Sequence record: PQ015378.1
Length of the DNA stretch: 64,000 bases
Direction: 5' to 3' (one strand)
Position 1 is the first letter of the stretch, and the number at the start of each line of letters is the position of its first letter. Of the stretch, positions 3,599 to 62,794 are shown one piece after another. Below the pieces are notes generated by a model. It saw nothing but the letters and a program-made list of their open reading frames with translations. It made no database searches and had not been told where the DNA came from. A program made the translations under genes and the position numbers.

Positions 3599-3629
3599 CA
3601 TACGGGTTCCCTTCGGGAACCTTTATGCC
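3599..3629 (+). terminator. UUCG hairpin with CATA/TATGCC flanks
   Basis: cata-cgggttccc-TTCG-ggaacc-tttatgcc directly after the dfr stop. Confidence 0.75.
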
Positions 3630-3651
3630 ATATTGAAAAGATTCTGGAACC

Positions 3652-3659
3652 TATATTAC
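3652..3659 (+). promoter_or_regulatory. phiKZ-type early promoter core TATATTAC (ACC class)
   Basis: Exact TATATTAC in an intergenic gap after a terminator. Confidence 0.8.
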
Positions 3660-3693
3660 AATCATGAATCTAATCTACCGAAAGGAATGTAAC

Positions 3694-4431
3694 ATGGTTA
3701 ACGAAGTAGAGATCAAAGAGCACCTGCAAGCCCATGCCACTATCTTCCAGATGAGCCTCAGTGATTTCATCGTCACTGCCGGTGCTGCTCTGGTACTACA
3801 TGGCCTGCGTGAAGAAACCAATGACATCGACGTGGACATCCACCTTCGTGACTACAGCCTGATCAAAGGGAACTTCCCAATGCATCGCCTGAGTCCTTGC
3901 TTATTCGGTGAGACTATGTCGATCGGTACGTTGCTTGACATACACATGTACGAAGCTCGCCCTTCGACGGTTGTCATCGATGGGATGGTGGTGCTGTCGG
4001 TAGATGCCCTGCTGGATCAGTACACTCGGATGTACGATCACCCCGCACGCCAGAAAGACAAGCGCGAAGCAGATGCAATCGCGATCGGGAAACTACGTGA
4101 GATCATCGACCGCCGTGAGCGTGCCAAACCCCTGACCAAAGAAACGTTCAATGATGCAGCGAATGAAGTTGCAGCGACACTGTGGCAATTCAGTCGTATT
4201 CGTAACTTCATGAAAGGGCGTGCCGTGGGTTCGCATCAAGCCTTCCATGGTCCTAATGGCCACCTCTGGTTTGTCATGGTCACCGAAGGATTGAACCGCA
4301 TGCGGATGATTGACTTCTATGAATCCGAGCACCGTTCGAGCCGTGGCCATGAAGCACACGCACAGCTGAACGATCCATTGCTGTTCAAGCATGGCAACAA
4401 CCAACATCGCTTCACTTGCTACATCGATTAA
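3694..4431 (+). CDS. Pol-beta-superfamily nucleotidyltransferase domain protein
   Basis: FIVTAGAALVLHGLREETNDIDVD (hG[GS/A]...DxD signature); start moved to ATG 3694 after AAGGA. Confidence 0.7.
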   Translation: MVNEVEIKEHLQAHATIFQMSLSDFIVTAGAALVLHGLREETNDIDVDIHLRDYSLIKGNFPMHRLSPCLFGETMSIGTLLDIHMYEARPSTVVIDGMVVLSVDALLDQYTRMYDHPARQKDKREADAIAIGKLREIIDRRERAKPLTKETFNDAANEVAATLWQFSRIRNFMKGRAVGSHQAFHGPNGHLWFVMVTEGLNRMRMIDFYESEHRSSRGHEAHAQLNDPLLFKHGNNQHRFTCYID

Positions 4432-4432
4432 C

Positions 4433-4481
4433 GGCATACTGGCTACCCTTCGGGGTAGCCATTGCTCTTATTTTTTTTTTT
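4433..4481. terminator. Bidirectional UUCG terminator between convergent genes
   Basis: ggctaccc-TTCG-gggtagcc at 4441-4460, T-run at about 4470-4481; TATGCCGT follows the hairpin on the minus strand. Confidence 0.85.
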
Positions 4482-6640: not shown

Positions 6641-6730
6641 TTATACACACCTTGTGTTAGTAGGGCTGGAACGATATAAAAGATTTTCGACCACGCCCCA
6701 GCACGAAGCGAATATTAGTCATAAAATTAC

Positions 6731-6764
6731 GGCATAAACGGCCACCATTAGGTAGCCGAGTATG
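6731..6764 (-). terminator. Hairpin with CATA/TTTATGCC flanks
   Basis: Minus strand catac-tcggctacc-taat-ggtggccg-tttatgcc after the stop at 6767. Confidence 0.65.
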
Positions 6765-6766
6765 TT

Positions 6767-8452
6767 TTAAATCAACTGCTTAAGAGGCAGTGCAGTCATT
6801 GCCAACTGCAGATCCGTACCCACGGTTCGACGAATCCATTGGATGTAAACGAGCTCGCCATCATTGGTCAAGTCGTTGTTCACCTTCAGTACATCGCCCC
6901 ATTGAGAGACAGCGTATTCGTACTTGTTGTGGAGGAAGTGCACTACGAAGTGTGTAGGGATTGGTGGGACTACTTCCTGCTCTGGGTTGATCAGAGGCTC
7001 AGCATTGTAGTACATCTTCTGCAGCCAGGTCTCTTGGGTTTGTGCCCCGTTGGCCAGTCGCAGGTTCCATTGGTTGGTTTCGATGTATTCCACGTTTGCC
7101 TTGAGATCACGGCCGTACGAGACTTCTTGGTCTGGACGGAACTTGATCTCCCAGTTCGCCTCACCGTTGGAACCAGCTGTGAGCAGAGCGATCTGCACAG
7201 TAGCTACAAAGCGAACAGGTTTAAATACCCCGTCTACTTCGTTCAGGTTCACAGCGTAAGTCAGATCCTGGATGTACCCGTAACCCTTCGGATCGAATGG
7301 CTTCGAAGTCATACCGAGTTCGACCTGTGGCGTGATGTTCCAGTACCGTTCCCGGTCTTGGTTGTACAGCCAGAATTCGAGACGGTAGCCCGCAGCTTCG
7401 TTCACCCATACCGGATAAACGAACAGGCGACATTCGTAAGCACCTTCTGCCGGAGTGGTCCGAGCGATGTAGTTGACGGTGATCTTACGATCAGTGGTTG
7501 GGTTGAGGCCATAGGAGACCTCGTCCGGAGCCAGCTGATATGTTTGAGTGATCTTGAACTCTTGGCCCACTTCGGTGGCGATGTAGTTTCGCAGACCGAG
7601 CAGTTCCATTGGACCGCCTGTAGGCGACATGCGATTCTTCTTACCGTCACGGTAATGCACCAGACCAGTCATCGGTAGTGTTTCCACAGCGACGTTCAGT
7701 GGGAATTCGATTACCTTCGGATCAGCAGAGCTGAGCCATGCGGTGTCGAGAGAGATTCCCTTAACATAGCGCTTCGACGTATCCGGTTGACGGATCGCTT
7801 GCGAGTTCACAACTACCAGCTGTGCAATAGACAGCTGCTTACCGTTAGCCGAGTAGGCTACCAGCGTAACGCGTTCACCGTCAGGCAGTGCGGTCGACGT
7901 ATAACCCGCCATTGGAACAGTCACACCGTGCTCGTACTGAGTGCCAGGCAACATACCTGGCAAGATGGCTTGTTCGACAGGGATCATCGGACCGATGTAA
8001 CTACCCGACGGATCGTAGAACTCAGAGATGACTTTCCCATATTGTTCCGAGATGTCACTACCTTTGAAGATCTTGTAACCCTGGACTTCAGTACCATAGA
8101 AATGGCAACGGAGATCTGGGGAGAAGGTGTGAGGTGTCACCGTCTGGTCAAGGAAGATCCGGAACGATTCAGACGTATAGCCCGGACCGGTTGCAATTAG
8201 GACGTTTTCTGGACCGTCCGGATCAGGGCTCTGTGGTTCTGTCCAGCGTTCCAGGATTGACATCCCGGTAGTCTGGTCGACTTCGATGACCCGGAAGAGA
8301 CCTTGGTCCCAATCCCGCACGGCGTCATCTTTGTTCGGGATGTATTTGTTGGCTTCGCCAGGGTAGCTGACGATCTGAGATCGCAGCCACTCCCGGTAAC
8401 CACGATCTGGGTCGAGAAACGCAGACCGCTCGAATGGGACAAATGCAGGCAT
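6767..8452 (-). CDS. Virion structural protein (phiKZ gp26-like)
   Basis: 561 aa; synteny between terL and the sheath operon. Confidence 0.75.
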
Positions 8453-16809: not shown

Positions 16810-17205
16810 ATGCGTAAGTTCATGACCCCTGCGTTCGCTTTCCTGTTGTCCGTGGCCAGCCTCTCTGCAACAGCCTCTGTCGTTGAAACGGCCCGTGACC
16901 AGGCCAACCGTACCCGTGAGCTTGCGCACACTCCTGTGGAGCTTCCTAGCGCGGCTAACGTCAACCCCGATGTATTGAGGGATCTGTTCGTTAGCTCGTT
17001 CTTGATGCACTGCGAGAAACAGGTCTGTATGAATGTGGCTGGTAAGGTTCCTGTCCCAGTTACTGAAGAGAACTACGTCGAGGGTTACTCGGTGGTGTTC
17101 GAATCTGGTGTACTGGAACGGAATCTGCTAGATCGCAAGAAACTTCAGCCATACTACCCATGGTTGTCGGATCTCTATCAGCAGTTGTACGCTGATCTGA
17201 AGTAA
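16810..17205 (+). CDS. Exported protein with Sec-type signal peptide
   Basis: MRKF + hydrophobic core + ATA/S cleavage-like site; RBS AAGGAG. Confidence 0.75.
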   Translation: MRKFMTPAFAFLLSVASLSATASVVETARDQANRTRELAHTPVELPSAANVNPDVLRDLFVSSFLMHCEKQVCMNVAGKVPVPVTEENYVEGYSVVFESGVLERNLLDRKKLQPYYPWLSDLYQQLYADLK

Positions 17206-17252
17206 CGACATAATGGCCTCCCTTCGGGGAGGCCTTATGCTGTTATTTTTTT
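17206..17252. terminator. Bidirectional UUCG terminator
   Basis: cgacataat-ggcctccc-TTCG-gggaggcc-ttatgc plus a T-run, between convergent genes. Confidence 0.85.
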
Positions 17253-18500
17253 TTATCGAGCGTAGTGGTTCTTGGTCATTACCCGAAGAGTCATGTAGAG
17301 CATGATTCCGGTGCGAGTAGCTGCCAGTACCGCTTTGTTCTTTACACCAGTGGCGTCGGCAACAACACGTTCACCCACATCACGCAGGTACAGAACCCGT
17401 GGGTCAGATGAACGAGAGGCCATCAGCTTGGACTTGATCTTGAGAATCAATCCCTCCAGGTCGTTCGAACGTTGGATAGCTGTCCGTTCCGATTGCATCT
17501 GGTCGAATACATACAACAGACATTCCTCCAGCATCTTGTCGATGTGTTGCATCCGAGCTTGCCCTACGTTCCGCACCATGTATTTGAGTGTGTCTTCAAA
17601 AGGCTGTGCTGGCATGGAGTCCTGCATTGCTCGTTCGATAACACCCATTAGTTCAGGACGCACGAAGTTGGCTTCGTTTGTGATGATCTCTTTGCCGTAG
17701 CGAAGATAAGAACCGAACCCATTGACTTTGTCTTTGAGGAACGAATCACCATCTGTGGAAATCCCCATCTCGGACGTAGAGATTACCTTACCGCCTTCTT
17801 TCAGTACTTGAACATACACCGCATAGATCTTGTTGATCACTTCACGGATACGTGATTGGGTGTCGGTTACCACACGGGTAGACCAATAATCGGTCAGCGA
17901 GTTCCTGGCACCGAAGATGTGATCGGTGTAGTTCGTGTCAGTCCCGATGATTGACAGGCAACGATCACGGATTAGGGCGTGCCAACTACCCAAGCGCCGG
18001 ATGTCCCATTTGTAGTTCAGTGACATGAACGTAGCTTCCGCCACTTCGCGTTTCGCAGGATATTGGAAACGACGGCTCAGCAACGAGGTCAGGTATTTGA
18101 TGTGCAGTAGTGTAAACAATGCAATCATTGTTTCATCCCGCAAGTTTCCAGGGAGGCTGGTATTCAACATCAGCTTCCGACAGAGGAAAGCAGGGATGTG
18201 GTTGAACGAATCCGAGTTCACGTTGTGTGAAGGATCGATCACGTCCAGCTTTAGGAAGTCGTATTGCAGAAGGTCGTCGTTGATCTTCAGGACTTCGTCA
18301 TACCACTGTTCGCGGTCAGACGGGAACCAACGAATCGGGTTGACACCCAACAGAGCACCACCGAAGAAAGCAGAGTGGTCTGCGTTCTTATTCATGAAGC
18401 GAGTTACGAAGTTGATAACGCGCATGCAGAATGCGCGGTCGAGTACGACGCCAGCGAAATGGCGTTCTAACAATTCGACGATAGAGGTTGTTTCATGCAT
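17253..18500 (-). CDS. Conserved virion protein (phiKZ gp32-like)
   Basis: FFGGALLGVNPIRW; start placed at ATG 18500 after AGGAG; synteny. Confidence 0.7.
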   Translation of the reverse strand: MHETTSIVELLERHFAGVVLDRAFCMRVINFVTRFMNKNADHSAFFGGALLGVNPIRWFPSDREQWYDEVLKINDDLLQYDFLKLDVIDPSHNVNSDSFNHIPAFLCRKLMLNTSLPGNLRDETMIALFTLLHIKYLTSLLSRRFQYPAKREVAEATFMSLNYKWDIRRLGSWHALIRDRCLSIIGTDTNYTDHIFGARNSLTDYWSTRVVTDTQSRIREVINKIYAVYVQVLKEGGKVISTSEMGISTDGDSFLKDKVNGFGSYLRYGKEIITNEANFVRPELMGVIERAMQDSMPAQPFEDTLKYMVRNVGQARMQHIDKMLEECLLYVFDQMQSERTAIQRSNDLEGLILKIKSKLMASRSSDPRVLYLRDVGERVVADATGVKNKAVLAATRTGIMLYMTLRVMTKNHYAR

Positions 18501-20179: not shown

Positions 20180-20215
20180 GGGGCCTTCGGGCCCCTCTTA
20201 TGCCGTTTTTCTTTT
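20180..20215 (+). terminator. UUCG terminator
   Basis: ggggcc-TTCG-ggcccc-tcttatgccg-ttttt. Confidence 0.8.
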
Positions 20216-20249
20216 ATCCTCTGAATCCCAACAACTAGGAGTTATCGCA

Positions 20250-21346: not shown

Positions 21347-21381
21347 CATAAACGCCTTCCCTTCGGGGAAGGCTTTATGCT
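21347..21381 (+). terminator. UUCG terminator with CATAAA/TTTATG flanks
   Basis: cataaac-gccttccc-TTCG-gggaaggc-tttatgc. Confidence 0.8.
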
Positions 21382-21386
21382 GCAAT

Positions 21387-25150: not shown

Positions 25151-25182
25151 GGGGGCCTTCGGGCCCCTGCTTATTTCTTTTT
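25151..25182 (+). terminator. UUCG terminator
   Basis: ggggcc-TTCG-ggcccc followed by a T-rich tract. Confidence 0.8.
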
Positions 25183-27873: not shown

Positions 27874-27920
27874 CATATCGGGAGCCTTCTGGCTCCCCTT
27901 ATGCCTTCTCTTTTTTTTTC
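27874..27920 (+). terminator. Hairpin terminator
   Basis: cata-tc-gggagcc-ttct-ggctccc-cttatgcc plus a T-run. Confidence 0.8.
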
Positions 27921-28274: not shown

Positions 28275-28275
28275 C

Positions 28276-28323
28276 GACATAAGCCTCCACCTTCGGGTGG
28301 AGGCATTGCTGATATTTTTTTTT
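28276..28323. terminator. Bidirectional UUCG terminator
   Basis: gacataa-gcctccacc-TTCG-ggtggaggc plus a T-run, between convergent genes. Confidence 0.85.
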
Positions 28324-28337
28324 GTTCTGTTACACGA

Positions 28338-29701: not shown

Positions 29702-30631
29702 ATGACGGATAAAAAGCTGGTCGTCTTCGACACTCGAAATGCCCAAAGTGTCATCCTCGACTATCTCACCCATCTGTATACGCAACAGCCCCTAGTTGGG
29801 ATGGTTCAACCTAACAAGATCCAAGTCCTGAACATCGTTCAATCGCTTCTGGCTCAGATCTTCGAATCCCGTGATCGCAATATCCCTAAGGACAGCGAGA
29901 ACGATTGGGAGGTGATCCAGGCGTCGCTGTTGTTCGGTATCGGTCCAGGACAAGTCCTGCATCGTCAGGTGAAATACGCGAAGCAGGTTTTCGAACAAGA
30001 ACTGATCAAGTCTCTTTATTGGGACCTCACCCAGCAAGCAGATGCACATTCCACGTTGTCCTCGTACATCCAGTGGGAAGTCATCAATACCGGTTCCACC
30101 ATCGTCGCAATCGAACGCGGTGATGCTCGCCTTCTGCAATGGAAGGAGATTCAGGATGCTCAGGGTGAAACCCATCACCGACTGAACCTGAATCGTGTGT
30201 TCGATGAGTTCAAAGAAGAATTCGAAAAGACTCATGGCCCATACCCTGCATCCCAGTTGGATGCCATGATTCTGAAAGGCGTACTCGACATGTTCCCTCA
30301 GCTCAGGATCCGTAATAAGGTCGAGCAGGTTAACTACGAGATCGCCGCGGCCTACAACATTCCTGACCTTCCACTGTGGCTCGATGCCTACATGAAGAAA
30401 GTCCTGGAAGCCTTCTGCATCCCTGCATTCGCGGTGTACATCCCAGCTGGTGTTACCTACGACTGCGAGTACTTCAATCACATCCTGGTGGTAAAGGAGA
30501 TGAAAGAAGATGAGTTGGTTGAAGAAACCGATTCGGATAAAGAACTGGCATTGGCATTGATGCGTGGTGATTACCTACCACGTGAAGATCGTGAACGTGC
30601 TGAACGCTACATCCTCGATAATCAAATGTGA
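29702..30631 (+). CDS. Conserved hypothetical protein
   Basis: 309 aa, RBS GGAG. Confidence 0.85.
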   Translation: MTDKKLVVFDTRNAQSVILDYLTHLYTQQPLVGMVQPNKIQVLNIVQSLLAQIFESRDRNIPKDSENDWEVIQASLLFGIGPGQVLHRQVKYAKQVFEQELIKSLYWDLTQQADAHSTLSSYIQWEVINTGSTIVAIERGDARLLQWKEIQDAQGETHHRLNLNRVFDEFKEEFEKTHGPYPASQLDAMILKGVLDMFPQLRIRNKVEQVNYEIAAAYNIPDLPLWLDAYMKKVLEAFCIPAFAVYIPAGVTYDCEYFNHILVVKEMKEDELVEETDSDKELALALMRGDYLPREDRERAERYILDNQM

Positions 30632-30656
30632 GGGCCCTCCGGGTCCTCTATGCCGT
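30630..30656 (+). terminator. Weak hairpin with TATGCCGT flank
   Basis: gagggcc...ggtcctc-tatgccgt. Confidence 0.5.
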
Positions 30657-33262: not shown

Positions 33263-33289
33263 GCCTCCCTTCGGGGAGGCTTTATGCCG
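33263..33289 (+). terminator. UUCG terminator (23-mer identical to 46339 and 62769)
   Basis: gcctccc-TTCG-gggaggc-tttat. Confidence 0.8.
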
Positions 33290-36043: not shown

Positions 36044-36074
36044 CATAGGGCCTCCCCAACCGGGGAGGCTTATG
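36044..36074 (+). terminator. Hairpin with CATA/TTATG flanks
   Basis: cata-gg-gcctcccc-aacc-ggggaggc-ttatg. Confidence 0.7.
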
Positions 36075-36082
36075 AGGGCTTT

Positions 36083-37558: not shown

Positions 37559-37742
37559 AAAGCAAGACCACTCGCTGAAACCAGGTTCCGGCCTGGTGTG
37601 CGCTGACGCTGTCTGGAGTGGAATCAAACGGGCACAACCTAACCATCGTGAAAGAACCTTCTCCGAGATGTGGGAACGCTCCAAGCGCATGGACTTCTGG
37701 TCGCCCGAGTTCACCCCAGCAGAAGTCATGGGTATCGCATAA

Positions 37743-37779
37743 CGGCAAAAGGGCTACCCTTCGGGGTAGCCTTATGTCA
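37743..37779. terminator. Bidirectional UUCG terminator (20-mer identical to 4441-4460)
   Basis: ggctaccc-TTCG-gggtagcc-ttatg. Confidence 0.8.
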
Positions 37780-38851
37780 GTTCCTCAACAAGCTTACGAA
37801 CGTCGTCCCACAGACGCTTCATCATTTCTGATGACCCGTTCATCCGTAGGGATTGTGAGTGCATTGCTTCTTGTAGTTCTCGCAGTACGATGTTGGTCTG
37901 GGTCTTATCATAGCCCGGAGCCTTCTTGACTGAGTCCACCAGATACTTGATGTAAGGTATCCTTGCAAGTGCTAATGCCCATTCGTTCTGAATCGTTACC
38001 GGACCCTTAGGAAGTTGGATGACCTGCCAGAGGTTGTCCTTCATGATCATCGGAGTGGATTGAGCGAGCTCAGTAATCATACCCGTGAACATCACCCGTT
38101 GTTCGATCGTGCGCTTAGCCATAGCGTCGATGTCATTGGTGTAATCAGGGATGTAGAATGGGTGCGGCAATGGATACTTTGTCGCAGGTAACTTGTAGGC
38201 CATTCGGGAGAGTCGGTTGAAATACGCAATCTCCAAATAGGATTCCAAGCTGTCCACCAGTACGTGTGCACCGATGAACTTGTAGTGGTTGACGGAGTCC
38301 CCATCAACTGCACCGAAGTTGTTGTAAACCCAGTGGCGGTACTGAACCATCAGCATTGGGATATTGATCATGATCACACCGTAGCCTTTGCCCGGTGTCT
38401 TGTTATTCATGATCGGTAGGTTCGTATCGGAGCGAGTGTGGTAAAGATAGCGAACTGGTTTCAGTTGTCTCCAACGACTGCGAAGACCTTGAGTATCAAA
38501 TCGTTCAATCGATGATATCACAACTTCTTCACATTCTGGACCCAGTGTTACGCCTTTGTCAAAAATCTTCCCTCTATTAATAGCATCAGTTAGCCCGAGG
38601 TTACGGATCAGCAGCTTTGCCTGATCCTCGCACTTCTTTGCCCACTGTGCATCATCGCTCCGGTATTCCAAAACGAAGTGACTGATAATGAGGGAAAAAA
38701 GATTTCTTGCGTCCACTACCTTTGGATGTCGCCGGTAGTAGTTTGTAACGTCTTCCATCACACGCGCAACGTTGCGCTGGATTTGAGGACGCTTGGGGTC
38801 TAATACAACCCCTTTACTGCCAACGGGGTCATCACGAAAGAGTGTGTACAC
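37772..38851 (-). CDS. Conserved chimallivirus protein (phiKZ gp52-like)
   Basis: 359 aa, minus strand, between the polymerase and the chimallin region. Confidence 0.7.
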   Translation of the reverse strand: MYTLFRDDPVGSKGVVLDPKRPQIQRNVARVMEDVTNYYRRHPKVVDARNLFSLIISHFVLEYRSDDAQWAKKCEDQAKLLIRNLGLTDAINRGKIFDKGVTLGPECEEVVISSIERFDTQGLRSRWRQLKPVRYLYHTRSDTNLPIMNNKTPGKGYGVIMINIPMLMVQYRHWVYNNFGAVDGDSVNHYKFIGAHVLVDSLESYLEIAYFNRLSRMAYKLPATKYPLPHPFYIPDYTNDIDAMAKRTIEQRVMFTGMITELAQSTPMIMKDNLWQVIQLPKGPVTIQNEWALALARIPYIKYLVDSVKKAPGYDKTQTNIVLRELQEAMHSQSLRMNGSSEMMKRLWDDVRKLVEELT

Positions 38852-38867
38852 AGGAAAGCTCCAATCG

Positions 38868-40827: not shown

Positions 40828-40850
40828 AAAAAATCTCAGATCTATATCAC
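40828..40850 (+). promoter_or_regulatory. Early promoter of chmA, AAAAAATCTCAGATCTATATCAC
   Basis: Extended motif with a T-to-C variant in the core. Confidence 0.8.
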
Positions 40851-40922
40851 TATCCTGAATCAAACCAGCAATTGGAATGATTCTTCTTGATCAAGAATCC
40901 CCGCAATAGAAAGGAACGTGAC

Positions 40923-42827: not shown

Positions 42828-42863
42828 TCTTCGGATTAGAACTGTAGCTACCTGAATAGAATG

Positions 42864-42898
42864 GGCTCCCTTCGGGGAGCCTGTTTTATTTCTTTTTT
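42864..42898 (+). terminator. UUCG terminator after chmA
   Basis: ggctccc-TTCG-gggagcc plus a T-rich tract. Confidence 0.8.
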
Positions 42899-42929
42899 GT
42901 CTTTTGTGGTTTAGGGTTAGGAGAGTCAA

Positions 42930-44408: not shown

Positions 44409-44424
44409 GGGGACTTCGGTCCCC
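44409..44424 (+). terminator. UUCG hairpin
   Basis: ggggac-TTCG-gtcccc preceded by cataaac. Confidence 0.65.
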
Positions 44425-46332: not shown

Positions 46333-46361
46333 ATAAACGCCTCCCTTCGGGGAGGCTTTAT
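46333..46361 (+). terminator. UUCG terminator
   Basis: cataaac-gcctccc-TTCG-gggaggc-tttat. Confidence 0.8.
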
Positions 46362-46375
46362 TCCGTGAGGTAGTT

Positions 46376-47400: not shown

Positions 47401-47438
47401 GGGGACCTTCGGGTCCCCTACGCTTCTTTTTCTTTCTC
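47401..47438 (+). terminator. UUCG terminator
   Basis: ggggacc-TTCG-ggtcccc plus a T-rich tract. Confidence 0.8.
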
Positions 47439-51835: not shown

Positions 51836-51861
51836 GGCTACCTTCGGGTAGCCTTATGCCC
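51836..51861 (+). terminator. UUCG terminator
   Basis: ggctacc-TTCG-ggtagcc-ttatgcc. Confidence 0.8.
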
Positions 51862-53522: not shown

Positions 53523-55208
53523 ATGTACAATGTCCTAGCCGGTAACTCTTCCGTTCGTATCGGCAATCTCGTCCTGGTTCAATCTGGTACTTACCAAGAG
53601 CAACACGTTCGTCCATTCAACATGGCCGTAACGGACGCAGCAATCAACCAGCTGCACAACGCTACTCGGGGAGGTATGAACCTGGGTGTGTCGGCAGTAC
53701 AAGAAATCGCCGGTAGCATCGTCGCACCCGCTGCCCAGACTGAAGGTCTGGTTGGCATCAAAGAAGGTTGGACTTCTCGTCGTTTCCGTGGCTTCGTCCG
53801 CGTACACGAAGAGCATCCGATGATCAAGGGCACTTCCACTCAGCGCATCTTCTTCATCTATACCGACCAGTGCGACGTCAGCTACGGTAACCTCCTGGAC
53901 CCGAACATGCGGGTCTACTTCAACTCGGAAACCGTGATCACCGAGCGACTGGAGCAAACCCCGATGGGTATCCAGAAAGTCGCGAAGGTTCAAGCATCGA
54001 ACCAGATCGTAACCCCGGTCGACATGATGGCTGGTGCCAACGGCCTGTTCTCGGCACCTGCGGCTCACCTGATCCGTCCTGAAGACATCTTCTCGATCGG
54101 TCAGACCCAAGCGGTAATCGATCGCCTCCAATCCACCAACCGTTTCAACGGCACCATCAACCGCATGCATGACCACCGTACCATGGTCGGTGAATGTGGT
54201 GCGTATCAGTACTCGCATCGTCAGGACACTTCTCCTGTCCGTTACGTCTCCAACTCCCTGAGTGCATTCCAGCATTCGGTGCGTGAAGCAGACATGTTGG
54301 GCTCGGATGGTTACGGCAACAACGCCAGCGATTCCCGTGAGCATCTGTACGGTGAAGCACAAGCGCACGCTGCCAACCAGAACATCCACAGCAACTCGTT
54401 CCTGGCTCGTCTGAAAGAACAGGCGAACTACATGGAACGTGGTTACGTGACCTGGGGCGATCTGTGCCGCATTTTCCCTGAACTGGTTCAGCAAGCTGGT
54501 TGCGCTGCCTGGTCCATGGACAACGGTCAGTCGATCCGTAAGGTAAACTTCGCTCAGGATTCGATGCACTTCCAAGGTGCTGACAATACCTCGATCGCAG
54601 CTTCCCTGTTGGCTCAAGCTGTACCTTCGCTGATGATGGACTGCTTCCTGCGTCACGTCAGCTTCGCAGTAACCAACGGTGATCACCCAGGTACCTACAA
54701 GCTGGAGTTCCATGGTGAGGGCATCAAGTCCATCATGGAAGGTATCGACATGCGTCCATACCTGATGGAGTTCGAACGTCGTCTCGCAACCGACTGCCTG
54801 AACAACATCACCTACGGCAACCAGATCGGATTCCAGATCTCCATGGCATCTGACCTGGCTGGTGACTCCGTCATCAACATCTCGCTGCAAGGCGAACAAG
54901 TAGTGCGGTGGGTTGCTCCTACTTTCACCGACAGTCTGTTCACCCCGATCGTTACTCGTGACGGTCAGAAGGCGAACAAGATTGCCAACGACATGCTGTA
55001 CCTGGTATCGGCCGTAGTACCGAATGCCCCGCAGATGCAATCGATGCAAATGCTGCAGCAAAACCAAGCCCCTAACGGCGGCTTCCCGCAGCAAGACATG
55101 AGTGCACCTTACATGGTCACTCCGTATCTGCACCCACAAGCCCCAGTCGCTACCATCCAGCCAGTTCAACAAGGAGCAATGAATGCTATCTCTTTCGAAG
55201 GTCTATGA
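53523..55208 (+). CDS. picA: Nuclear import factor PicA/Imp1 (phiKZ gp69-like)
   Basis: 561 aa directly after the gp68 homolog; QSGTYQEQHVRPF, GWTSRRFR, YTDQ, LIRPEDIF. Confidence 0.8.
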   Translation: MYNVLAGNSSVRIGNLVLVQSGTYQEQHVRPFNMAVTDAAINQLHNATRGGMNLGVSAVQEIAGSIVAPAAQTEGLVGIKEGWTSRRFRGFVRVHEEHPMIKGTSTQRIFFIYTDQCDVSYGNLLDPNMRVYFNSETVITERLEQTPMGIQKVAKVQASNQIVTPVDMMAGANGLFSAPAAHLIRPEDIFSIGQTQAVIDRLQSTNRFNGTINRMHDHRTMVGECGAYQYSHRQDTSPVRYVSNSLSAFQHSVREADMLGSDGYGNNASDSREHLYGEAQAHAANQNIHSNSFLARLKEQANYMERGYVTWGDLCRIFPELVQQAGCAAWSMDNGQSIRKVNFAQDSMHFQGADNTSIAASLLAQAVPSLMMDCFLRHVSFAVTNGDHPGTYKLEFHGEGIKSIMEGIDMRPYLMEFERRLATDCLNNITYGNQIGFQISMASDLAGDSVINISLQGEQVVRWVAPTFTDSLFTPIVTRDGQKANKIANDMLYLVSAVVPNAPQMQSMQMLQQNQAPNGGFPQQDMSAPYMVTPYLHPQAPVATIQPVQQGAMNAISFEGL

Positions 55209-56580
55209 GGGTATCCTGAAGTCCATGCAGTATGACGTGGACGAAACAGGACTCGTAAGTGTCATCACCCCCACCGGCACTAAAGCCGAAGCGAAAGTAA
55301 ACGGCAATCGTCTCGTGATCCCAACCCAGAAGCGTCTGCGCGAAGGCTTCGGTGAAGATCTCCAGCCGTACCACCCACTGTGTGAGAGCCCTTCCCGTAA
55401 GGGTACCTCGCCGGTGCTGCAACACATGCAACGTTCGGTCAAGCATCACCTCGGCTTCCTGATCAGCTTCCTGGCTGACCAGCTCGTCAAGCTGTCGCTG
55501 AACACCGACCAGCACAAAGACCTCCCGCCGGAAATGACCGATCTGCTGATGAAGCTGACCGCCGTGACCGACAAGACCCAAGGTCTCCTGGACAAGCTGA
55601 TCCCAGCAGCGTCCAAGCAGAACAAGCTGGTCACCGTATACCTGAAAGGCCCAGGCAACTTCAAGGGTCAGAAGGTCAACCGTATCGCTGTCATCCGTTT
55701 CCCGATCCTGGATGAACTGGACTCCGATGCCGACAAGGACATGGTCCTCGGTATCAAGATCCCAGCCAAGCAGCGTAAAGCACTGTCGGCTCTCCTGCGT
55801 CTGATCGTTCCATTCGGTGACGATCCAGAAGAGTACAGCGCCGGTACCGTCAGTCGGGTGGCTCCGTTCCTCACCGTGTTCCTGCAAGCGTATCACAAGA
55901 TCGCTACCCGCATGAACCAGATGATCAACCGTCTGGCTGGTCCTCTGCACCTCCCACTGAAACCAATCGAACTGTTCCCGCTGGAATGGATCGATGAGTT
56001 CCCGAAGATCTACAATCAGATCCCTTCGCTGAACGGTAACGATGGTGGTGTGGATGACGAGAATGAAGTTACCACGGTAGCACCAGCTCCGCAAGCGGCA
56101 GCAACGCCACAAGCAACTCGTCAACCGGTGGTAATGCCATCGATGGCCGAGATGTTCAACAACCCACAGGCCTCCCAGCCAGTGCAACCACAGCAACAGT
56201 ACTCCCGTCCTGCCGCAGCTTCGGCTCCAGCAGCACAGAAGCAGACCGTAGCTGAACTGCTGGGTACCAGTGCTCCACAAATGCCACAGATGATGCCTCA
56301 GCAGCAGATGTACATGCAGCCACAGCAGATGATGGTCAACCAGTACGGCCAACCGATGATGCAGCAGCCAATGATGATGCCGCAGATGAACACCGGTGGC
56401 CAAGCACAACTGCCTTGGCAGATGCAACAGCAGCAAATGCAGATGCAACAGCAGAACCCGTATCTGCAGGTGTTCCAACAACCTCAGCAACAGCAGATGA
56501 TGCAGCAACCGATCTACGGCATGCCGCAACAGCAGCAGATGTGGGGTCAACAGATGTACCAAACAGGTCCAGGCCTGTAA
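55183..56580 (+). CDS. gp70-like protein with a long Q/M/P-rich C-terminal region
   Basis: RBS AGGAG inside picA; FHPLCE-type motif (YHPLCES); low-complexity tail. Confidence 0.8.
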   Translation: MLSLSKVYEGILKSMQYDVDETGLVSVITPTGTKAEAKVNGNRLVIPTQKRLREGFGEDLQPYHPLCESPSRKGTSPVLQHMQRSVKHHLGFLISFLADQLVKLSLNTDQHKDLPPEMTDLLMKLTAVTDKTQGLLDKLIPAASKQNKLVTVYLKGPGNFKGQKVNRIAVIRFPILDELDSDADKDMVLGIKIPAKQRKALSALLRLIVPFGDDPEEYSAGTVSRVAPFLTVFLQAYHKIATRMNQMINRLAGPLHLPLKPIELFPLEWIDEFPKIYNQIPSLNGNDGGVDDENEVTTVAPAPQAAATPQATRQPVVMPSMAEMFNNPQASQPVQPQQQYSRPAAASAPAAQKQTVAELLGTSAPQMPQMMPQQQMYMQPQQMMVNQYGQPMMQQPMMMPQMNTGGQAQLPWQMQQQQMQMQQQNPYLQVFQQPQQQQMMQQPIYGMPQQQQMWGQQMYQTGPGL

Positions 56581-56581
56581 A

Positions 56582-56613
56582 CGACATAGTGGGAGCCTTC
56601 GGGCTCCCATTAG
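56582..56613. terminator. Bidirectional UUCG terminator
   Basis: cgacatag-tgggagcc-TTCG-ggctccca, between convergent genes. Confidence 0.8.
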
Positions 56614-56985
56614 TCATTTAAATTTTCTACTCATGTAGAGTTTAACCAACTCACTCACTTCGTTATCGTTAGGCCGAATCAACTTCGGGCTGACGCTAGG
56701 GTTATTCGGGTCTCGCATTTCCTTAGCGAACTGGTTAGGGTTGGTCATACCGTTCATCCGCAACAGGATGAAGTGCATGTGTGGAAGGATACCTATCTCG
56801 GTCAGGTATCCATAGAAGTCACCTTCGTATTGATAGAAGAGATCCAAAGGGATTTCGTCTACCGCCGCTGCGCGGTTGATCAGTACGTTGAGAGCGGACT
56901 CGACGATCAATCGGAACTCCGCTGTGTAATAAAGGTCGTCTCCGGCCTTCGCCATCTTTTTGTCGGTTAGAATTGTGAAAGCCAT
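56614..56985 (-). CDS. Small conserved protein, possibly LysM/gpX-like
   Basis: YEGDFYGYL...ILLRMNG..NP pattern. Confidence 0.65.
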   Translation of the reverse strand: MAFTILTDKKMAKAGDDLYYTAEFRLIVESALNVLINRAAAVDEIPLDLFYQYEGDFYGYLTEIGILPHMHFILLRMNGMTNPNQFAKEMRDPNNPSVSPKLIRPNDNEVSELVKLYMSRKFK

Positions 56986-57049: not shown

Positions 57050-59197
57050 ATGCCCACCGTGTATCAAGTCTCTGAAGCGTACATGCAGAAACTGCGGACA
57101 CGTGACATCGATGAAACCCTTCTCGGTAACGCGTGTCTCGATCCGTTCTATGGAACAACCTCTTCTGCTCGTGGTGCGATGTTCCTTTCGCACATCGGTC
57201 AGTCTCCGGAATCGGAAGGTTGTGAACCTCGCCGTTGGCAAGCTGGTATGGAGCTGCAATTCGGTGAGTACACGTTCGACGTGAAGTTCCCCGTAGACTG
57301 TGTGATCCTGGCAGTACTTCGCAAATACCCGACTTCGGGTATGGGCACCGCAATCCGTCGTAACCCGGTAACCACCGTCGTCTTCGAGCATTATTACGAC
57401 AAGCACAAGACCAAGGATGTCCTGCACATCACTGACTTCTGCTCGCTCCACCAAGACTTCGGTTTCAAACTCGAAAAGAACAAGCAAGTCATGGAGAACC
57501 TGGTCCCAGGCCAGATGTTCGCCAAAGGTACCGTCATCGCACAAACCCGTGCCGTTCGTGAGAATGGAATGTGGGGAGCAGGTGTGAACATGAACGCAGT
57601 GTTCTTGTCCATGCCAGCTACCATTGAAGACGGATTCATCTTCTCTGACAAAGCTCTGGAGAAACTCAGTCCTCGGATCTACAACGAAGCTGTGGGTAAC
57701 GCTGGTCGCAAAGCGTTCTTCTTGAACATGTACGGCGACGAGAACAACTACAAGCCATTCCCGGATATCGGTGAGAAGATTCGTCCTGACGGGGTGGTCT
57801 TCGCATTGCGGGAACTGGATCCAGATCTGTCACCAGCCGACATGACCTGTCGGGCGTTGATGACGCTGGACCGAACGTTCGACAAAGCAACGATCGGTAT
57901 CCCAGGTGCCACCGTGGTAGACATCAACATCTATCGCGACGATCGAGTGAATCCTTCCCACACCCCACTGGGTATGGACGGTCAGCTCATGAAGTATCAC
58001 ACGGCTCTGGCGAACTACTACCGCGAGATCATGAAGCTGTACAACAACCTGTATGGTCGTTGGAAAGATCAACTGCGTGTATCCCCTGAGTTCCACCAAC
58101 TCGTGGTAGAAGCGCAGATCCATCTACCAGTGAAACAAGACCAGCGGAAGCTCAGTCGCATGTGGCGCCTGGAGCCTCTGGACGAATGGCGTGTGTCGAT
58201 TACCTACGAAGCCATCAAGATGCCTGGTGGTGCTTACAAGGCAACTGACTGGCACGGTGGTAAGGGCGTAGTCTGTGGTGTAATGCCATGGGAAGACATG
58301 CCGGTAGACGAATGGGGCAATCGGGCTGATGTGGTGATCTTCGGTGGTTCGACGATGCGTCGTTCGAACTATGGTCGTCTCTACGAACAAGGCCTGGGTG
58401 CAGCAGCTCGTGACCTGGTACAACGCCTGCGCGTTGAGAAAGGTATGGACCGTCATGCAACTCCGACGGAACAACAACTCCAGGCAGCACTGGCAGATAA
58501 AGCCTGGGTAGACTACGCGTTCAATGAGCTCATCGAGTTCTATGAAATCGTAGCTCCATCCATGCCGCCAATCCTGCTGGAGAATCCAGACCCATATCAG
58601 CACGTGTATCACACGCTGCGTGATCAGTACTACCTGTTCACTCCGGTAACGGATCAGGTCTCGTTGATCGAAGCGGTAAACAAAGTCATCAACTCACGGT
58701 TCTGCCCGAACTTCGGCCCGATGACCTATCGTGGTCCAAACGGTGAAATGGTAACCACCAAAGACAAAGTGCTGTCTGGTTATCTGTACATCATGCTGCT
58801 GGAGAAGATCGGTGAAGACTGGTCGTCCGTAGCATCCGTGAAGACTCAGCCGTTCGGTCTACCTTCCAAACTGAACAACGCGGACCGTGCATCGACTCCT
58901 GGTCGTGAGACTGCGATTCGTTCGTGCGGTGAATCCGAAACTCGTTCGTACAACTCGGTAGTTGGCCCAGAAGCTACTAACGAGCTGATCGACCAAACCA
59001 ACAACCCAATGGCACACATCGCGGTGGTGAACTCCATCCTGACTGCCGATAAACCAACCAACATCGAACGCGCAGTAGATCGGGAAGCAATCCCGTTCGG
59101 TAACTCTCGTCCGGTGGCTCTGCTGAAACACCTGTTGGAATGCCGCGGTCTTCGTCTGAAGTACACACCGGATTCCGAAACCCGTTACGCTGCCTGA
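57050..59197 (+). CDS. nvRNAP beta subunit C-part (phiKZ gp71-73-like), uninterrupted
   Basis: GTTSSARGAMF, IEDGF, KPFPDIG, TDWHGGKGV, RRSNYGR, IRSCGESE; start after GGAG. Confidence 0.93.
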   Translation: MPTVYQVSEAYMQKLRTRDIDETLLGNACLDPFYGTTSSARGAMFLSHIGQSPESEGCEPRRWQAGMELQFGEYTFDVKFPVDCVILAVLRKYPTSGMGTAIRRNPVTTVVFEHYYDKHKTKDVLHITDFCSLHQDFGFKLEKNKQVMENLVPGQMFAKGTVIAQTRAVRENGMWGAGVNMNAVFLSMPATIEDGFIFSDKALEKLSPRIYNEAVGNAGRKAFFLNMYGDENNYKPFPDIGEKIRPDGVVFALRELDPDLSPADMTCRALMTLDRTFDKATIGIPGATVVDINIYRDDRVNPSHTPLGMDGQLMKYHTALANYYREIMKLYNNLYGRWKDQLRVSPEFHQLVVEAQIHLPVKQDQRKLSRMWRLEPLDEWRVSITYEAIKMPGGAYKATDWHGGKGVVCGVMPWEDMPVDEWGNRADVVIFGGSTMRRSNYGRLYEQGLGAAARDLVQRLRVEKGMDRHATPTEQQLQAALADKAWVDYAFNELIEFYEIVAPSMPPILLENPDPYQHVYHTLRDQYYLFTPVTDQVSLIEAVNKVINSRFCPNFGPMTYRGPNGEMVTTKDKVLSGYLYIMLLEKIGEDWSSVASVKTQPFGLPSKLNNADRASTPGRETAIRSCGESETRSYNSVVGPEATNELIDQTNNPMAHIAVVNSILTADKPTNIERAVDREAIPFGNSRPVALLKHLLECRGLRLKYTPDSETRYAA

Positions 59198-59204: not shown

Positions 59205-61187
59205 ATGAACCACTACAAAGCCCGTGACCTGCTAAACATGCCTTATGAGCAGCTGTGGGCTCTGCCCTCAGAATGGCACGTCATTGAATTTGATGATGGC
59301 GAAAAGTTGCTGGCTCGGGACCGCATCACCAAGCTGTCGGTCCTGAACTGGTTTCCCCTGAAAGCGTATCCCGATGTACCGATCCTGAAAGCGTATCACA
59401 TGGGTTCGAAGCGAGTGACTGCAAAGTCACTCGTGTCGTATCTCAACAAGGTCATCTGGGGTGTCCACGATCACACCAACGAAGAAGCTGATCCAGAGCA
59501 CCTGGCTAAGCTGGCAATCCAATCCGTCAACTGGTTGTATAACGAAGCAACCGTAAACCTGGCCCCATACGTCGCAACGCTGTCTATGTTCGACATCGCT
59601 GAAGTGTACAACCACCCAGCGATCCGCGAAGCGAACGAGAATGTGGAGGAATCGACTTATGGCATCGAGCAAGTTGCCTACAAGAAGATCGCTGCAGCCT
59701 TCGATGATACTTCACAGTTCCGCGGGAACTCTATTATTGAAGGGTATCGTTCTGGTACTCAGAAGCTGGAACAGCTGCTCCAGGCCTTTGGTCCGCGGGG
59801 CTATCCGACTGATATTAACTCGGACATCTTCGCGCACCCGGTAACGGTTGGTTATGTGGATGGCATCTGGGATCTGTATGGTTCCATGATCGAATCCCGT
59901 TCCGGTACCAAAGCTCTGCTGTATAACAAAGAGCTGCTTCGTGTAACCGAGTACTTCAACCGTAAGTCCCAGCTGATCGCGCAATACGTTCAGCGTCTGC
60001 ACAAGGGTGATTGCGGTGGGGCAGTCCTGATCGACTTCCCTGTGTTCAAGAACACCCTCAAGGCACTGCGAGGTAAGTACTACCTCAAAGATGCCAAGAC
60101 TGGCCAACTGGATTGGATCCGTGGTGACGAAACTCACCTGATCGGAACCAAGATCCAGATGCGTTCGGTTATCGGATGTGTGCACCCAGACCCAGCAGGT
60201 GTATGTGCCAAGTGTTATGGTCGGCTGAGCTTCTCGATCATGCGTGGTACCAACATCGGTCAGGTCAGTGCTGTATCGATGGGGGACAAGATCACCTCAT
60301 CGGTATTGTCTACCAAGCACACCGACGCAACGTCGGCGGTAGAACAGTTCCAGATCACTGGTTCCGTAGCACGATATCTCCGCACGGGTAATGCAGCGGA
60401 AACGCTGTATTTGAAACATGACTTGGCAAACCAAGGATATAAGCTGTATATCAAGGCATCCGAAGCTCCGGCTTTGGCCGACGTCTTGATGATCAATGAC
60501 CTCTCCGCTTATCCGGCTGAATCCGCATCCGAGCTGACTCACATCGGCTTGATCCGGACGGACGAGAATGGTGAAGATCATGGCGACATCCTTCCGGTAT
60601 CGCTGTACAACCGGAAGTCCAGCTTGTCCACGGAAATGCTCTGTCACGTTAAGCGTATCGGTTGGGTCGAGGACAAACGCGATAACATCGTGATTGACCT
60701 TCAGGGCTTCGACTTCTCTCAACCATTCCTGACGTTGCCTAACAAGCACGTGAACATGTACGAGTTCATGAAACGCGTACAATCGTTCCTGCACTCGGGT
60801 GACAACGGTGATGGCTCGAAACTGTCGTCGGATAAGGTCGGCTTCACCAGCAAGACCTACCTGAAGAACTACCGAGATCCTGTCGATGCTCTTGCTGCTT
60901 TCGTATCGCTGATCAACGAGAAGATCAAACTGAACGTTGTTCATTGCGAAGTCTTGGTTTACGCTATGATGATTGTATCGGCACAGGCCAAAGACTATCG
61001 TCTGCCAATCCCAGGTATCACTGGTCAGTTTGAGAAGTATAACAAACTGATGGACAACCGTTCGTTGTCCAGCAAGCTGGCATTCGAGAAGCAACACGAG
61101 CCACTCAACAACCCCGGCAGCTTCCTGTACAAAAACAGGAACGACCACCCCTATGACATCGCTGTCTTGGGAGGTCAGATGTCCTAA
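59205..61187 (+). CDS. nvRNAP beta' subunit C-part (phiKZ gp74-like)
   Basis: TEYFNRK, LRGKYY, GVCAKCYG, VLSTKH and AFEKQ. Confidence 0.9.
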   Translation: MNHYKARDLLNMPYEQLWALPSEWHVIEFDDGEKLLARDRITKLSVLNWFPLKAYPDVPILKAYHMGSKRVTAKSLVSYLNKVIWGVHDHTNEEADPEHLAKLAIQSVNWLYNEATVNLAPYVATLSMFDIAEVYNHPAIREANENVEESTYGIEQVAYKKIAAAFDDTSQFRGNSIIEGYRSGTQKLEQLLQAFGPRGYPTDINSDIFAHPVTVGYVDGIWDLYGSMIESRSGTKALLYNKELLRVTEYFNRKSQLIAQYVQRLHKGDCGGAVLIDFPVFKNTLKALRGKYYLKDAKTGQLDWIRGDETHLIGTKIQMRSVIGCVHPDPAGVCAKCYGRLSFSIMRGTNIGQVSAVSMGDKITSSVLSTKHTDATSAVEQFQITGSVARYLRTGNAAETLYLKHDLANQGYKLYIKASEAPALADVLMINDLSAYPAESASELTHIGLIRTDENGEDHGDILPVSLYNRKSSLSTEMLCHVKRIGWVEDKRDNIVIDLQGFDFSQPFLTLPNKHVNMYEFMKRVQSFLHSGDNGDGSKLSSDKVGFTSKTYLKNYRDPVDALAAFVSLINEKIKLNVVHCEVLVYAMMIVSAQAKDYRLPIPGITGQFEKYNKLMDNRSLSSKLAFEKQHEPLNNPGSFLYKNRNDHPYDIAVLGGQMS

Positions 61188-61202
61188 GCGGAGGACGAAG
61201 TG

Positions 61203-61238
61203 GGAGGGCTTCGGCCCTCCATCACTCGTTTAATTTTT
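61203..61238 (+). terminator. UUCG terminator
   Basis: ggagggc-TTCG-gccctcc with a downstream T-run. Confidence 0.7.
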
Positions 61239-61239
61239 T

Positions 61240-62766
61240 ATGGAACCAGCACTGACAGTCGAAAGGTATACCCACGGTGTACGCTTGTCCGGCTACACGA
61301 AGGATACGCTGTACAAAATGCAGCGCTTCCTCGATACGTTACTGCTACGGGAACCGACTAAGGTCCAAGGCCGAATGGTCATGGTCACGAAGAAGAAGTA
61401 CTACGGCATGACGGAGGATGGGACTTCCATCTTCATCCACCGGAACTCGTACCCCCAGTTGGTATCCCACTTGGCCAATGTGGGGATCACAGATGAAAAG
61501 ATCAATGTGATCGACATTCCGGTTCCCAAGGCTGAACCCGCCACGTTTGTGGTGCAATCCAAGTTCACTGCACACGAGTATCAGGAGAAGATCAAAGAAG
61601 ACATTCTGAGACCTCACCTGCACTCCGCACGGGTGGACTTGCAAACAGGTAAGGGAAAGACCTTCAGTTCGTTGTACACGGTCTCTACGATCGCTCAGCG
61701 GCTTGTGGTCATGGTTCCTCCCAAGTACTTCGGTATCTGGCAGGAGGCATTGGAAGACGTCTACGAAAACATGCAGATGCGTTGGATGACCGTATCGGGA
61801 TCTGGAGAACTCCAGGCTCTAATCGACCGAGGGATCAATGATGATCTCAAGGGCATCGACGTGATCATTATCTCCAACGTAACCTATCGTTCGTATATAG
61901 ATGCATTCGAGCGATTGGGGGATAAGATCCACACCGTTGGTTACAATGCCCCGCCACCTCGTTTCCATGAAGCGATCAAAGCGGGCGTCCAGATCAACGA
62001 TGAGATCCAGGAAGACCCTGGTCTGCTGTTCCGTACCGACATTTACACCAACATCGCAAAACAGATCTACCTGTCTGCTACGCCGTACACTGGTAACTCC
62101 TACGTTACCAAGATGATCGATTTGATGCTTCCACCAGAAACGGCTTGTCGTCTGCCTGAATGGGATATGTATATCAACGCGGTCGGTGTTCTGTATAGCG
62201 AGCCTGACATCCGATCCAAAGATTATCTGACGCCGTTCAAGAACACGTATAACCATGCGCGTTACGAAACGCAGATGATGAAATCGAAGAAACGACTGCA
62301 GCTGTACAACACAATGGTGGCACGTATTATCCAGAAGCAATTCCTGGAAGATAAGCAGCCTGAGCAGAAATGCTTGGTACTGTGTGCGACTGTTGAATTC
62401 ATCAAGCAGTTGGTGAAGTTCCTCAAAGAGAAGTACCCGGATCAAGATATCTGGGAACACGTCTCTGGCTCGCCCTTCGAACGTCTGCAAACGAATGACA
62501 TCACCATCTCTACGATCAAGTCGTCGGGTACCGGTGTTGACATTAAGAACTTGCGTGAGGTGATCCTGTGTCAAGCAACTGACTCGAAGAAGGATAACAT
62601 CCAGATTCTGGGTCGACTGCGGAAACTCAAGCTCTACCCTGAAGTTACCCCACGGCTGACCTTCTTGGTTTGCCAGAACATTCCGCAGCATTGCAACTAC
62701 GCTCGGAATAAACGGGAACACTTCATGGGGAAAGCTCTCAACATGGCAATGCGGCGCTACGGTTAA
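61240..62766 (+). CDS. SF2 helicase (phiKZ gp75-like)
   Basis: LQTGKGKT, DEIQ, LSATP, GTGVDI and QILGRLR. Confidence 0.92.
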   Translation: MEPALTVERYTHGVRLSGYTKDTLYKMQRFLDTLLLREPTKVQGRMVMVTKKKYYGMTEDGTSIFIHRNSYPQLVSHLANVGITDEKINVIDIPVPKAEPATFVVQSKFTAHEYQEKIKEDILRPHLHSARVDLQTGKGKTFSSLYTVSTIAQRLVVMVPPKYFGIWQEALEDVYENMQMRWMTVSGSGELQALIDRGINDDLKGIDVIIISNVTYRSYIDAFERLGDKIHTVGYNAPPPRFHEAIKAGVQINDEIQEDPGLLFRTDIYTNIAKQIYLSATPYTGNSYVTKMIDLMLPPETACRLPEWDMYINAVGVLYSEPDIRSKDYLTPFKNTYNHARYETQMMKSKKRLQLYNTMVARIIQKQFLEDKQPEQKCLVLCATVEFIKQLVKFLKEKYPDQDIWEHVSGSPFERLQTNDITISTIKSSGTGVDIKNLREVILCQATDSKKDNIQILGRLRKLKLYPEVTPRLTFLVCQNIPQHCNYARNKREHFMGKALNMAMRRYG

Positions 62767-62768
62767 TG

Positions 62769-62794
62769 GCCTCCCTTCGGGGAGGCTTTATTTC
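62769..62794 (+). terminator. UUCG terminator
   Basis: gcctccc-TTCG-gggaggc-tttat. Confidence 0.75.

Follow-up and report, generated by a model that had tools for sequence, protein, structure and literature searches.

Gene-end hairpins with a TTAT tail are probable phiKZ-type transcription terminators in Pseudomonas phage RVTF4

We analysed a family of GC-rich hairpins, most of them followed directly by a TTAT-containing box, in a 64,000-nucleotide (nt) stretch of the jumbo phage Pseudomonas phage RVTF4 (hereafter the window: bases 62001-126000 of PQ015378.1, window base 1 being genome base 62001). These elements are most likely intrinsic transcription terminators of the chimalliviruses, of the phiKZ-type 'hairpin + TTAT' form. 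This reading draws on the anatomy of the element, its orientation with transcription, changes in the stem that preserve structure, conservation of the box in phages infecting four host genera and a constant position of published RNA 3' ends in a relative. RVTF4 is the sort of phage in which phiKZ-type terminators belong, as it encodes chimallin and phiKZ-type virion and non-virion RNA polymerases (vRNAP and nvRNAP); within the window its record annotates genes for chimallin (as nuclear shell protein), the terminase and the tail sheath as well as several for DNA-directed RNA polymerase. By megablast, window positions 33000-41000 match RVTF4 at 100%. The genome has 302,537 base pairs (bp) and a GC content of 52%. 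Its chimallin gave tblastn matches in related phages, of which Psa21 and D6 are the closest (~77% DNA identity in conserved genes), followed by PhiPA3, 201phi2-1 and phiKZ. Counts were made genome-wide on the whole RVTF4 sequence; gene context beyond the window came from a simple gene caller (364 genes vs 393 annotated), with a few junctions misassigned.

This kind of element is already known from relatives of RVTF4. Mapping by ONT-cappable-seq located 61 terminators in phiKZ, with the motif BCCYCCCCHWWDGGGRRGGBYTTATKYYGT (Putzeys et al. 2024, microLife, PMC10914365), and 132 termination sites in 201phi2-1, where motif A (n = 59) resembles the phiKZ motif (Poppeliers et al. 2024, PMC11512511). 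In 201phi2-1 the combination of motifs A and B lengthens the stem and terminated more strongly in a reporter assay in uninfected P. chlororaphis, and cloned elements lowered downstream reporter expression, some of them beyond lambda T0 (PMC11512511). Judged by sequence, the RVTF4 logo is the published phiKZ and 201phi2-1 terminator motif. The three phages share a GC-rich stem with a C-rich 5' arm and a G-rich 3' arm, a short loop and then Y-TTAT-K-Y-Y-G-T, as well as a 5' partner that lengthens the stem, a location at gene ends and a two-way arrangement at convergent genes. RVTF4 differs in its genomic GC content (52% vs 37-45%), in a stronger preference for UUCG loops and in its release position, which is C in 86% of tails. 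The RNA ends of phiKZ and 201phi2-1 are mapped, whereas those of RVTF4 are projected from 201phi2-1.

The text of the 201phi2-1 paper prints the coordinates of eight termination sites, from which we took the 3'-end offsets. On NC_010821.1 every one of them lands at the 8th nt past the GC stem, in TTTATGY[Y]G; one of the eight has a T-run downstream, and its RNA end still lies in the box. With RNA ends in 201phi2-1 at this eighth base, inside the box, the box forms the transcript's 3' tail and stands at the position of the U-tract. The first-pass annotation of the window had described the flank as present instead of an adjacent U-tract, and here it was mistaken: the flank is the tail itself. 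We infer the same end point for the RNAs of RVTF4. A literature search for the literal box sequence returned a sole match, a primer in a note on a Klebsiella jumbo phage.

The occurrence of hairpin and box together is real and highly non-random, with an enrichment far above chance. Reading every site listed by the first-pass annotation, we found its roughly 22 intergenic hairpins to be 22 GC-rich gene-end hairpins, and the (T)TATG[C/T] flank was present at all sites named for it, most weakly at 36070 (TTATGAGG). The minus-strand TATG[C/T]CGT was likewise present at the four convergent junctions (4433, 17206, 28275, 56581), as were the exact 23-mer at 33263, 46339 and 62769 (8 copies genome-wide), the exact 20-mer at 4441 and 37752 (3 copies genome-wide) and the displacement of T-runs, which begin ~10 nt past the stem where they are present. 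As to the 17 C(TTCG)G loops of that annotation, 16 hairpins are perfect TTCG-loop stems and the one at 3605 is readable as such in a shifted register; a direct window count of TTCG-loop stems of >=6 bp gives 18 on the plus strand and 0 on the minus strand, against a mean of 0.04 and a maximum of 1 in 200 dinucleotide-type shuffles. A box stands at the stem foot of ~18 of the 22 window hairpins, the four without one being those at 42864, 44409, 47401 and 61203. Genome-wide, TTATGCCG occurs 22 times vs ~2.4 times in Markov simulations. In 20 of these 22 cases it comes directly after a hairpin, and in the other two a T-run lies between hairpin and word. The box belongs to the hairpin unit and does not stand alone as a signal. 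Hairpins found without regard to their flanks and oriented by the upstream gene carried TTAT[G/T] at the foot in 58/97 intergenic vs 5/62 within-gene cases, and a repeat of the flank-blind run gave 57/99 vs 6/221; the fuller TATKYYG box was present in 45/99 intergenic hairpins vs 1-3% of genic ones.

The first-pass annotation had also suggested a covariance model and a genome-wide count. A model built from 40 RVTF4 sites gave 125 hits at 79 distinct sites of the genome, 18 of them in the window. The elements sit just 3' of stop codons (stop-to-stem distance mostly 5-9 nt), are oriented with the upstream gene and are two-way at convergent pairs; the better-scoring strand was the gene strand in 41/44 '++' and 8/8 '--' junctions (49/52 one-way junctions). 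Stems are 7-8 bp long with a C-rich 5' arm and a median stability of -14.1 kcal/mol, and the tail, aligned on TAT, reads G/C, C, Y, T, T, A, T, K, Y, C, G, T, where K is G in 74% and T in 25%, and the C, G and T after the Y are conserved at 86%, 59% and 62%. TATT replaces TATG in 17/67 boxes, some of them directly upstream of structural genes; the variant showed no significant association with a closely following start codon (p = 0.2). Just 5' of the stem a mirrored CATA was found at 13/18 convergent, 17/44 '++' and 1/8 '--' junctions, and in the folded RNA the 5' flank pairs with at least four of the eight bases of the tail at 63/79 sites. By eye, the 5' CATAA and the G/T position of the box showed no consistent compensation, so that this outer helix rests on sequence mirroring and folding and not on covariation.

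The stems themselves are diverse in sequence across sites. Pairing was kept in 98% of cells vs 66% in shuffles, with 223 vs 48 double-sided changes, in an alignment that had been fitted to the covariance model. Independently of the model, at 11 junctions common to RVTF4 and Psa21 the stems have been replaced with pairing preserved, and the box is preserved in 9-10 of them. The loop is biased to one strand, with sense-strand TTCG:CGAA ratios at one-way sites of 29:4 in RVTF4, 27:0 in 201phi2-1 and 26:0 in phiKZ, and because of this bias selection appears to act on the RNA and not on a DNA palindrome. We also observed an asymmetry between the arms, with 184 C vs 126 G in the 5' arm and GGAG in the 3' arm at 30/79 sites vs the 5' arm at 9/79. 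In many sites the 3' arm thus has the look of a Shine-Dalgarno sequence that is sequestered; the consensus of the phiKZ terminators has the same asymmetry.

We searched other phages with the RVTF4 model (E-value <= 0.01, both strands counted). The hits numbered 84 in 201phi2-1, 102 in Psa21, 121 in PhiPA3, 92 in phiKZ, 70 in Noxifer, 33 in LucasX, 14 in RP12, 12 in Goslar, 7 in RAY and 2 (weak) in T4; AR9, 14-1, phiR1-37 and EL gave 0. The top hits in the distant phages are all a hairpin followed by TTTATGYYG, with GCATA on the 5' side. Because the model favours UUCG loops, we rescanned whole genomes blind to both flank and loop. TATKYYG followed intergenic hairpins in RVTF4 (45/99), Psa21 (38/90), 201phi2-1 (36/99), phiKZ (37/119), RAY (31/70), LucasX (44/122), RP12 (43/106) and Goslar (3/24), and almost never in EL (1/67), T4 (0/33), 14-1 (0/10) or AR9 (1/54). 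The seven box-rich chimalliviruses span four host genera, namely Pseudomonas, Erwinia, Xanthomonas and Ralstonia. Absence of the flank from related phages had been named in the first-pass annotation among the results that would refute its interpretation; the flank is kept, even in chimalliviruses of other host genera. The box outlasts both the loop preference and the host genus, and therefore a tie to the phage's own machinery is suggested; conservation of this kind points to the transcription machinery and does not prove polymerase specificity.

Taken as terminators, the elements would work as follows. The polymerase would pass the stop codon by 5-9 nt, and the RNA would fold into a GC-rich stem of 7-8 bp, usually closed by UUCG. 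The hybrid between the template and the next eight bases, Y-U-U-A-U-(G/U)-Y-C, would be weak and U/A-rich, and release would occur at the eighth base, a pyrimidine usually ahead of G. The mirrored CATAA on the 5' side would pair with UUAUG and extend the helix into the hybrid; at convergent pairs it would also give the opposite transcript the same box, so that one hairpin would stop both directions. The box may be kept because the multisubunit polymerases of the phage pause or release there, given the weak hybrid and the pyrimidine-then-G step. A pyrimidine followed by G has the form of the elemental pause of bacterial RNA polymerase.

Several points weigh against this account. Past the release point, the two bases G and T are each just 54% conserved among co-directional sites of RVTF4, and for that reason we hold the pause idea loosely. 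The RVTF4 3' ends are carried over from a relative that shares ~43% chimallin identity, and ONT-cappable-seq, with its resolution of 1-2 nt, does not distinguish a terminated end from one trimmed back as far as a hairpin. In the reporter assay the host polymerase, too, was stopped by 201phi2-1 elements (PMC11512511), so the data call for no specificity for a phage polymerase. At ~17 co-directional sites the distance from hairpin to next start is <=30 nt, and therefore the terminators leak or something restarts transcription. Finally, EL is a phiKZ relative with many intergenic hairpins from which the box is nearly absent. Several EL hairpins precede a looser TTTATTAYG-like word, which may be a divergent terminator dialect.

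Like a bacterial intrinsic terminator, the element has a stable GC hairpin, release 7-9 nt past the stem, a U-rich proximal tail and an upstream A-rich partner that makes it two-way, and the elements of relatives function with host RNA polymerase. Unlike one, it has the fixed word UUAU(G/U)YC with an invariant A, a G/T-C-G ending and no U-run: TTTT occurs within the first 8 nt after the stem in 9/99 RVTF4 hairpins vs 10/33 in T4 and 6/10 in 14-1, so a canonical U-run right after the stem is not a feature of the RVTF4 family. The class II pause/termination signal of T7 RNA polymerase, a single-subunit enzyme, is the sequence-specific, hairpin-independent word ATCTGTT. It resembles the RVTF4 element in placing a conserved word near the release point in a phage polymerase system, but the RVTF4 word is always joined to a hairpin. 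The proposal that these hairpins are more than host-type terminators stands in part: they are terminators, on our reading, with a conserved 3' word kept across phages, but the motif had already been published (PMC10914365, PMC11512511).

A bolder version of the terminator reading, which we regard as unlikely, makes the box a stop word with the multisubunit polymerases of chimalliviruses as its specific readers. A beta-lobe pocket of phiKZ GP123 recognises non-template TATG at late promoters, and the same TATG-recognising pocket would grip the box during elongation. The polymerase would then be held a few bases downstream during hairpin formation, and one four-letter word would mark both starts and stops. 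This would explain the invariant A, the preference for G, release three bases past that G and the persistence of the word in phages of all four host genera, in contrast to the drift of stems and loops.

The same four letters raise the question, already put by the first-pass annotation, of whether the box is a dual signal: a terminator tail that, where it reads TATG, also serves as a late-promoter start at which nvRNAP (re)initiates at the G and feeds the abutting gene. The core of the late promoter in phiKZ is TATG, with transcription beginning at its G, and a beta-like subunit binds its non-template strand (PMC4666361, PMC12809450); the ~17 co-directional sites close to the next start would suit such a role, for example the terminase start 17 nt past the stem at 6723-6768, and recognition of late promoters is said to hinge on how easily the strands open. 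However, nvRNAP initiation is all but lost with any one base of TATG substituted, yet 17/67 boxes read TATT. At convergent junctions the box runs into the opposing gene at its 3' end, and a box without a hairpin is almost never seen. Neither a hairpin nor conserved bases past the G belong to the phiKZ late promoter (Yakunina 2015, PMC4666361; de Martin Garrido 2026, PMC12809450), whereas the RVTF4 box has TT and a stem before it, Y-C-G after it and tolerates T for G; P119L, a validated phiKZ late promoter, and its RVTF4 counterpart lack a hairpin and continue from TATG with T or A, not Y-C-G. The phiKZ and 201phi2-1 transcriptome papers report no starts at terminators (PMC10914365, PMC11512511). 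The supporting statement that nvRNAP needs a partly single-stranded template is not established either, as double-stranded polymerase chain reaction fragments were transcribed by Yakunina 2015 (PMC4666361). We thus find re-initiation at TATG unsupported and quite improbable.

Hairpin and box could also be an RNA-level element that is bound by a phage protein (ChmC, or an export or stability factor) or cut by a nuclease, the 3' ends then being products of processing. In its favour, 3' exonucleases likewise stall 7-10 nt past a stable stem, an invariant A and a G/T position go beyond the needs of a weak hybrid, and ChmC peaks from enhanced crosslinking and immunoprecipitation (eCLIP) lie near start codons, including inside operons, where hairpin-box elements sit. 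But the ChmC eCLIP study found no sequence motif, which leaves the suggested binding of ChmC unsupported, the geometry of a stem followed by 8 nt is that of intrinsic termination, and the cloned 201phi2-1 elements behave as terminators, since they reduce a reporter in host cells that carry no phage, in some cases beyond lambda T0. We consider this explanation very unlikely.

A DNA-level element (a cruciform, a palindrome for a dimeric DNA-binding protein or a mobile repeat) is extremely improbable: although the extended unit TAACGRCATAA-stem-TTATGYCGTTA is an imperfect palindrome and identical 20-23-mers recur, the reading is largely refuted by strand bias, since loops are strongly UUCG on the sense strand and box orientation tracks the gene strand, while stems vary by compensating changes that conserve pairing alone, and the cruciforms proposed earlier are unlikely because arms of 7-8 bp are short for extrusion and the loop is strand-biased. 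A dispersed repeat of the repetitive extragenic palindrome (REP) or miniature inverted-repeat transposable element (MITE) kind does not fit stems that are diverse and differ from those occupying the same Psa21 junctions.

Table 1. Gene-end hairpins of the RVTF4 window and features around them (window coordinates; stems are given 5' arm-loop-3' arm).
Position	Strand	Feature	Flank and context
3605..3630	+	Hairpin GGTTCCC/GGGAACC	Then box TTTATGCCA; TTCG loop readable in shifted register
3652	+	Early-promoter-like TATATTAC	Downstream of the 3605..3630 hairpin
4431..4481	both	Putative two-way terminator, convergent genes; stem GGCTACCC-TTCG-GGGTAGCC at 4441-4460	Minus strand GTATGCCGT after stem; plus strand T11 run ~10 nt past stem
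6723..6768	-	Imperfect hairpin, loop TAAT	Then TTTATGCCG; 17 nt ahead of terminase start codon
15493..15521	+	Hairpin, loop TCTG	Then TTTATGCCG
17205..17254	both	Putative two-way terminator, stem 17215-17234	Boxes TTATGCTG (plus) and TTATGTCG (minus); T9 run follows on plus strand; top covariance-model hit of the whole genome
20180..20217	+	Hairpin GGGGCC-TTCG-GGCCCC	Then TCTTATGCCG, next TTTTTCTTTT; in Psa21 stem different, box and T-run identical
21354..21382	+	Hairpin	Then TTTATGCTG; TATATTAC next at 21399
25152..25182	+	Hairpin GGGGCC-TTCG-GGCCCC	Then T-variant box CTTATTTC and T-rich run
27880..27920	+	Hairpin, loop TTCT	Then CTTATGCC and T9 run; TATATTAC next at 27937
28275..28325	both	Putative two-way terminator, 9-bp stem 28283-28304	Minus TTATGTCGT; plus T9 run ~10 nt past stem
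30630..30656	+	Imperfect hairpin (one G-U pair, short loop)	Then TATGCCGT
33263..33289	+	Hairpin GCCTCCC-TTCG-GGGAGGC	Then TTTATGCCG; next gene's ribosome-binding site and start codon (33301) after
36050..36077	+	Hairpin, loop AACC, after DNA polymerase gene	Then weak box TTATGAGG; hairpin not at corresponding Psa21 junction
37742..37787	both	Putative terminator, convergent genes, stem 37752-37771	Plus TTATGTCA; minus flank degenerate CTTTTGCCG
40923-42827		Nuclear shell protein (chimallin) gene	Record annotation
42864..42900	+	Hairpin after chimallin gene	No box at stem foot; T-rich tail TGTTTTATTTCTTTTTTG, kept in Psa21
42930-44396, 57059-59197, 59205-61187		DNA-directed RNA polymerase genes	Record annotation
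44409..44424	+	Hairpin GGGGAC-TTCG-GTCCCC	No box
46339..46365	+	Hairpin GCCTCCC-TTCG-GGGAGGC	Then T-variant box TTTATTCCG
47401..47437	+	Hairpin GGGGACC-TTCG-GGTCCCC	No box; tail TACGCTTCTTTTTCTTTC
51836..51861	+	Hairpin	Then TTATGCCC; TATATTAC next at 51892; in Psa21 unrelated stem, TATGCCCCAA retained
56581..56623	both	Putative terminator, convergent genes, stem 56591-56608	Minus CTATGTCGT; plus side without box
61203..61220	+	Hairpin GGAGGGC-TTCG-GCCCTCC	No box
62769..62795	+	Hairpin GCCTCCC-TTCG-GGGAGGC, after helicase gene	Then T-variant box TTTATTTCG
3652, 18550, 21399, 27937, 29270, 38883, 51892, 63219	+	Exact TATATTAC	
15544, 40843, 45373	+	One-mismatch TATATTAC	
4470-4481, 17246-17254, 20206-20217, 27909-27920, 28314-28323		T-runs, examples	

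Two further signals accompany the hairpins listed in Table 1. The word TATATTAC resembles the phiKZ early (vRNAP) promoter and may be an early promoter; it occurs genome-wide in 20 exact and ~9 near copies, all on the plus strand and often 26-40 nt past a terminator hairpin, in the extended context AAAATCTCAGATC-TATATTAC-N4-GTG or TTTAAA..AAAGCC-TATATTAC. T-runs (T8-T11 or TTTTTCTTTT) lie ~10 nt past the stem at 21/74 plus-direction vs 0/25 minus-direction terminators. They are found at convergent junctions too, where no promoter is expected, and are conserved in Psa21 and present in Erwinia phage RAY and 201phi2-1; we found no significant link between T-run terminators and the ends of early transcription units (Fisher p = 0.16, with crude unit assignment). 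Further, the terminator boxes at genome positions 54017 (-) and 134082 (+) are both followed by a longer word, TTATCCTTTGTATACA, which may represent another promoter class, possibly middle.

A search of sequencing runs for RNA sequencing of RVTF4 infection returned metagenome contigs only. Half of the 31-mers sampled from window positions 33000-38900 were present in contigs of one wastewater metagenome run, which points to an RVTF4-like phage in that sample. We also observed a 171-amino-acid open reading frame at 26895-27410 (+), in a stretch largely unannotated in GenBank between genes ending at 26886 and starting at 27341. Open frames of 699, 545 and 474 amino acids at 40860-42959 (-), 53535-55172 (-) and 55186-56610 (-) are antisense to chimallin and two large hypothetical genes, and are probably an effect of codon composition.

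New here are the genome-wide count in RVTF4, the eighth-base release point derived from published coordinates, the cross-host comparison with its controls and the arguments against re-initiation and cruciforms. If the elements are terminators, RVTF4 would gain a map of ~79 transcription-unit ends and, once the putative early promoters with TATATTAC are added, an initial operon map drawn from sequence alone. The box would also offer a handle on how the unusual polymerases of these phages terminate transcription.

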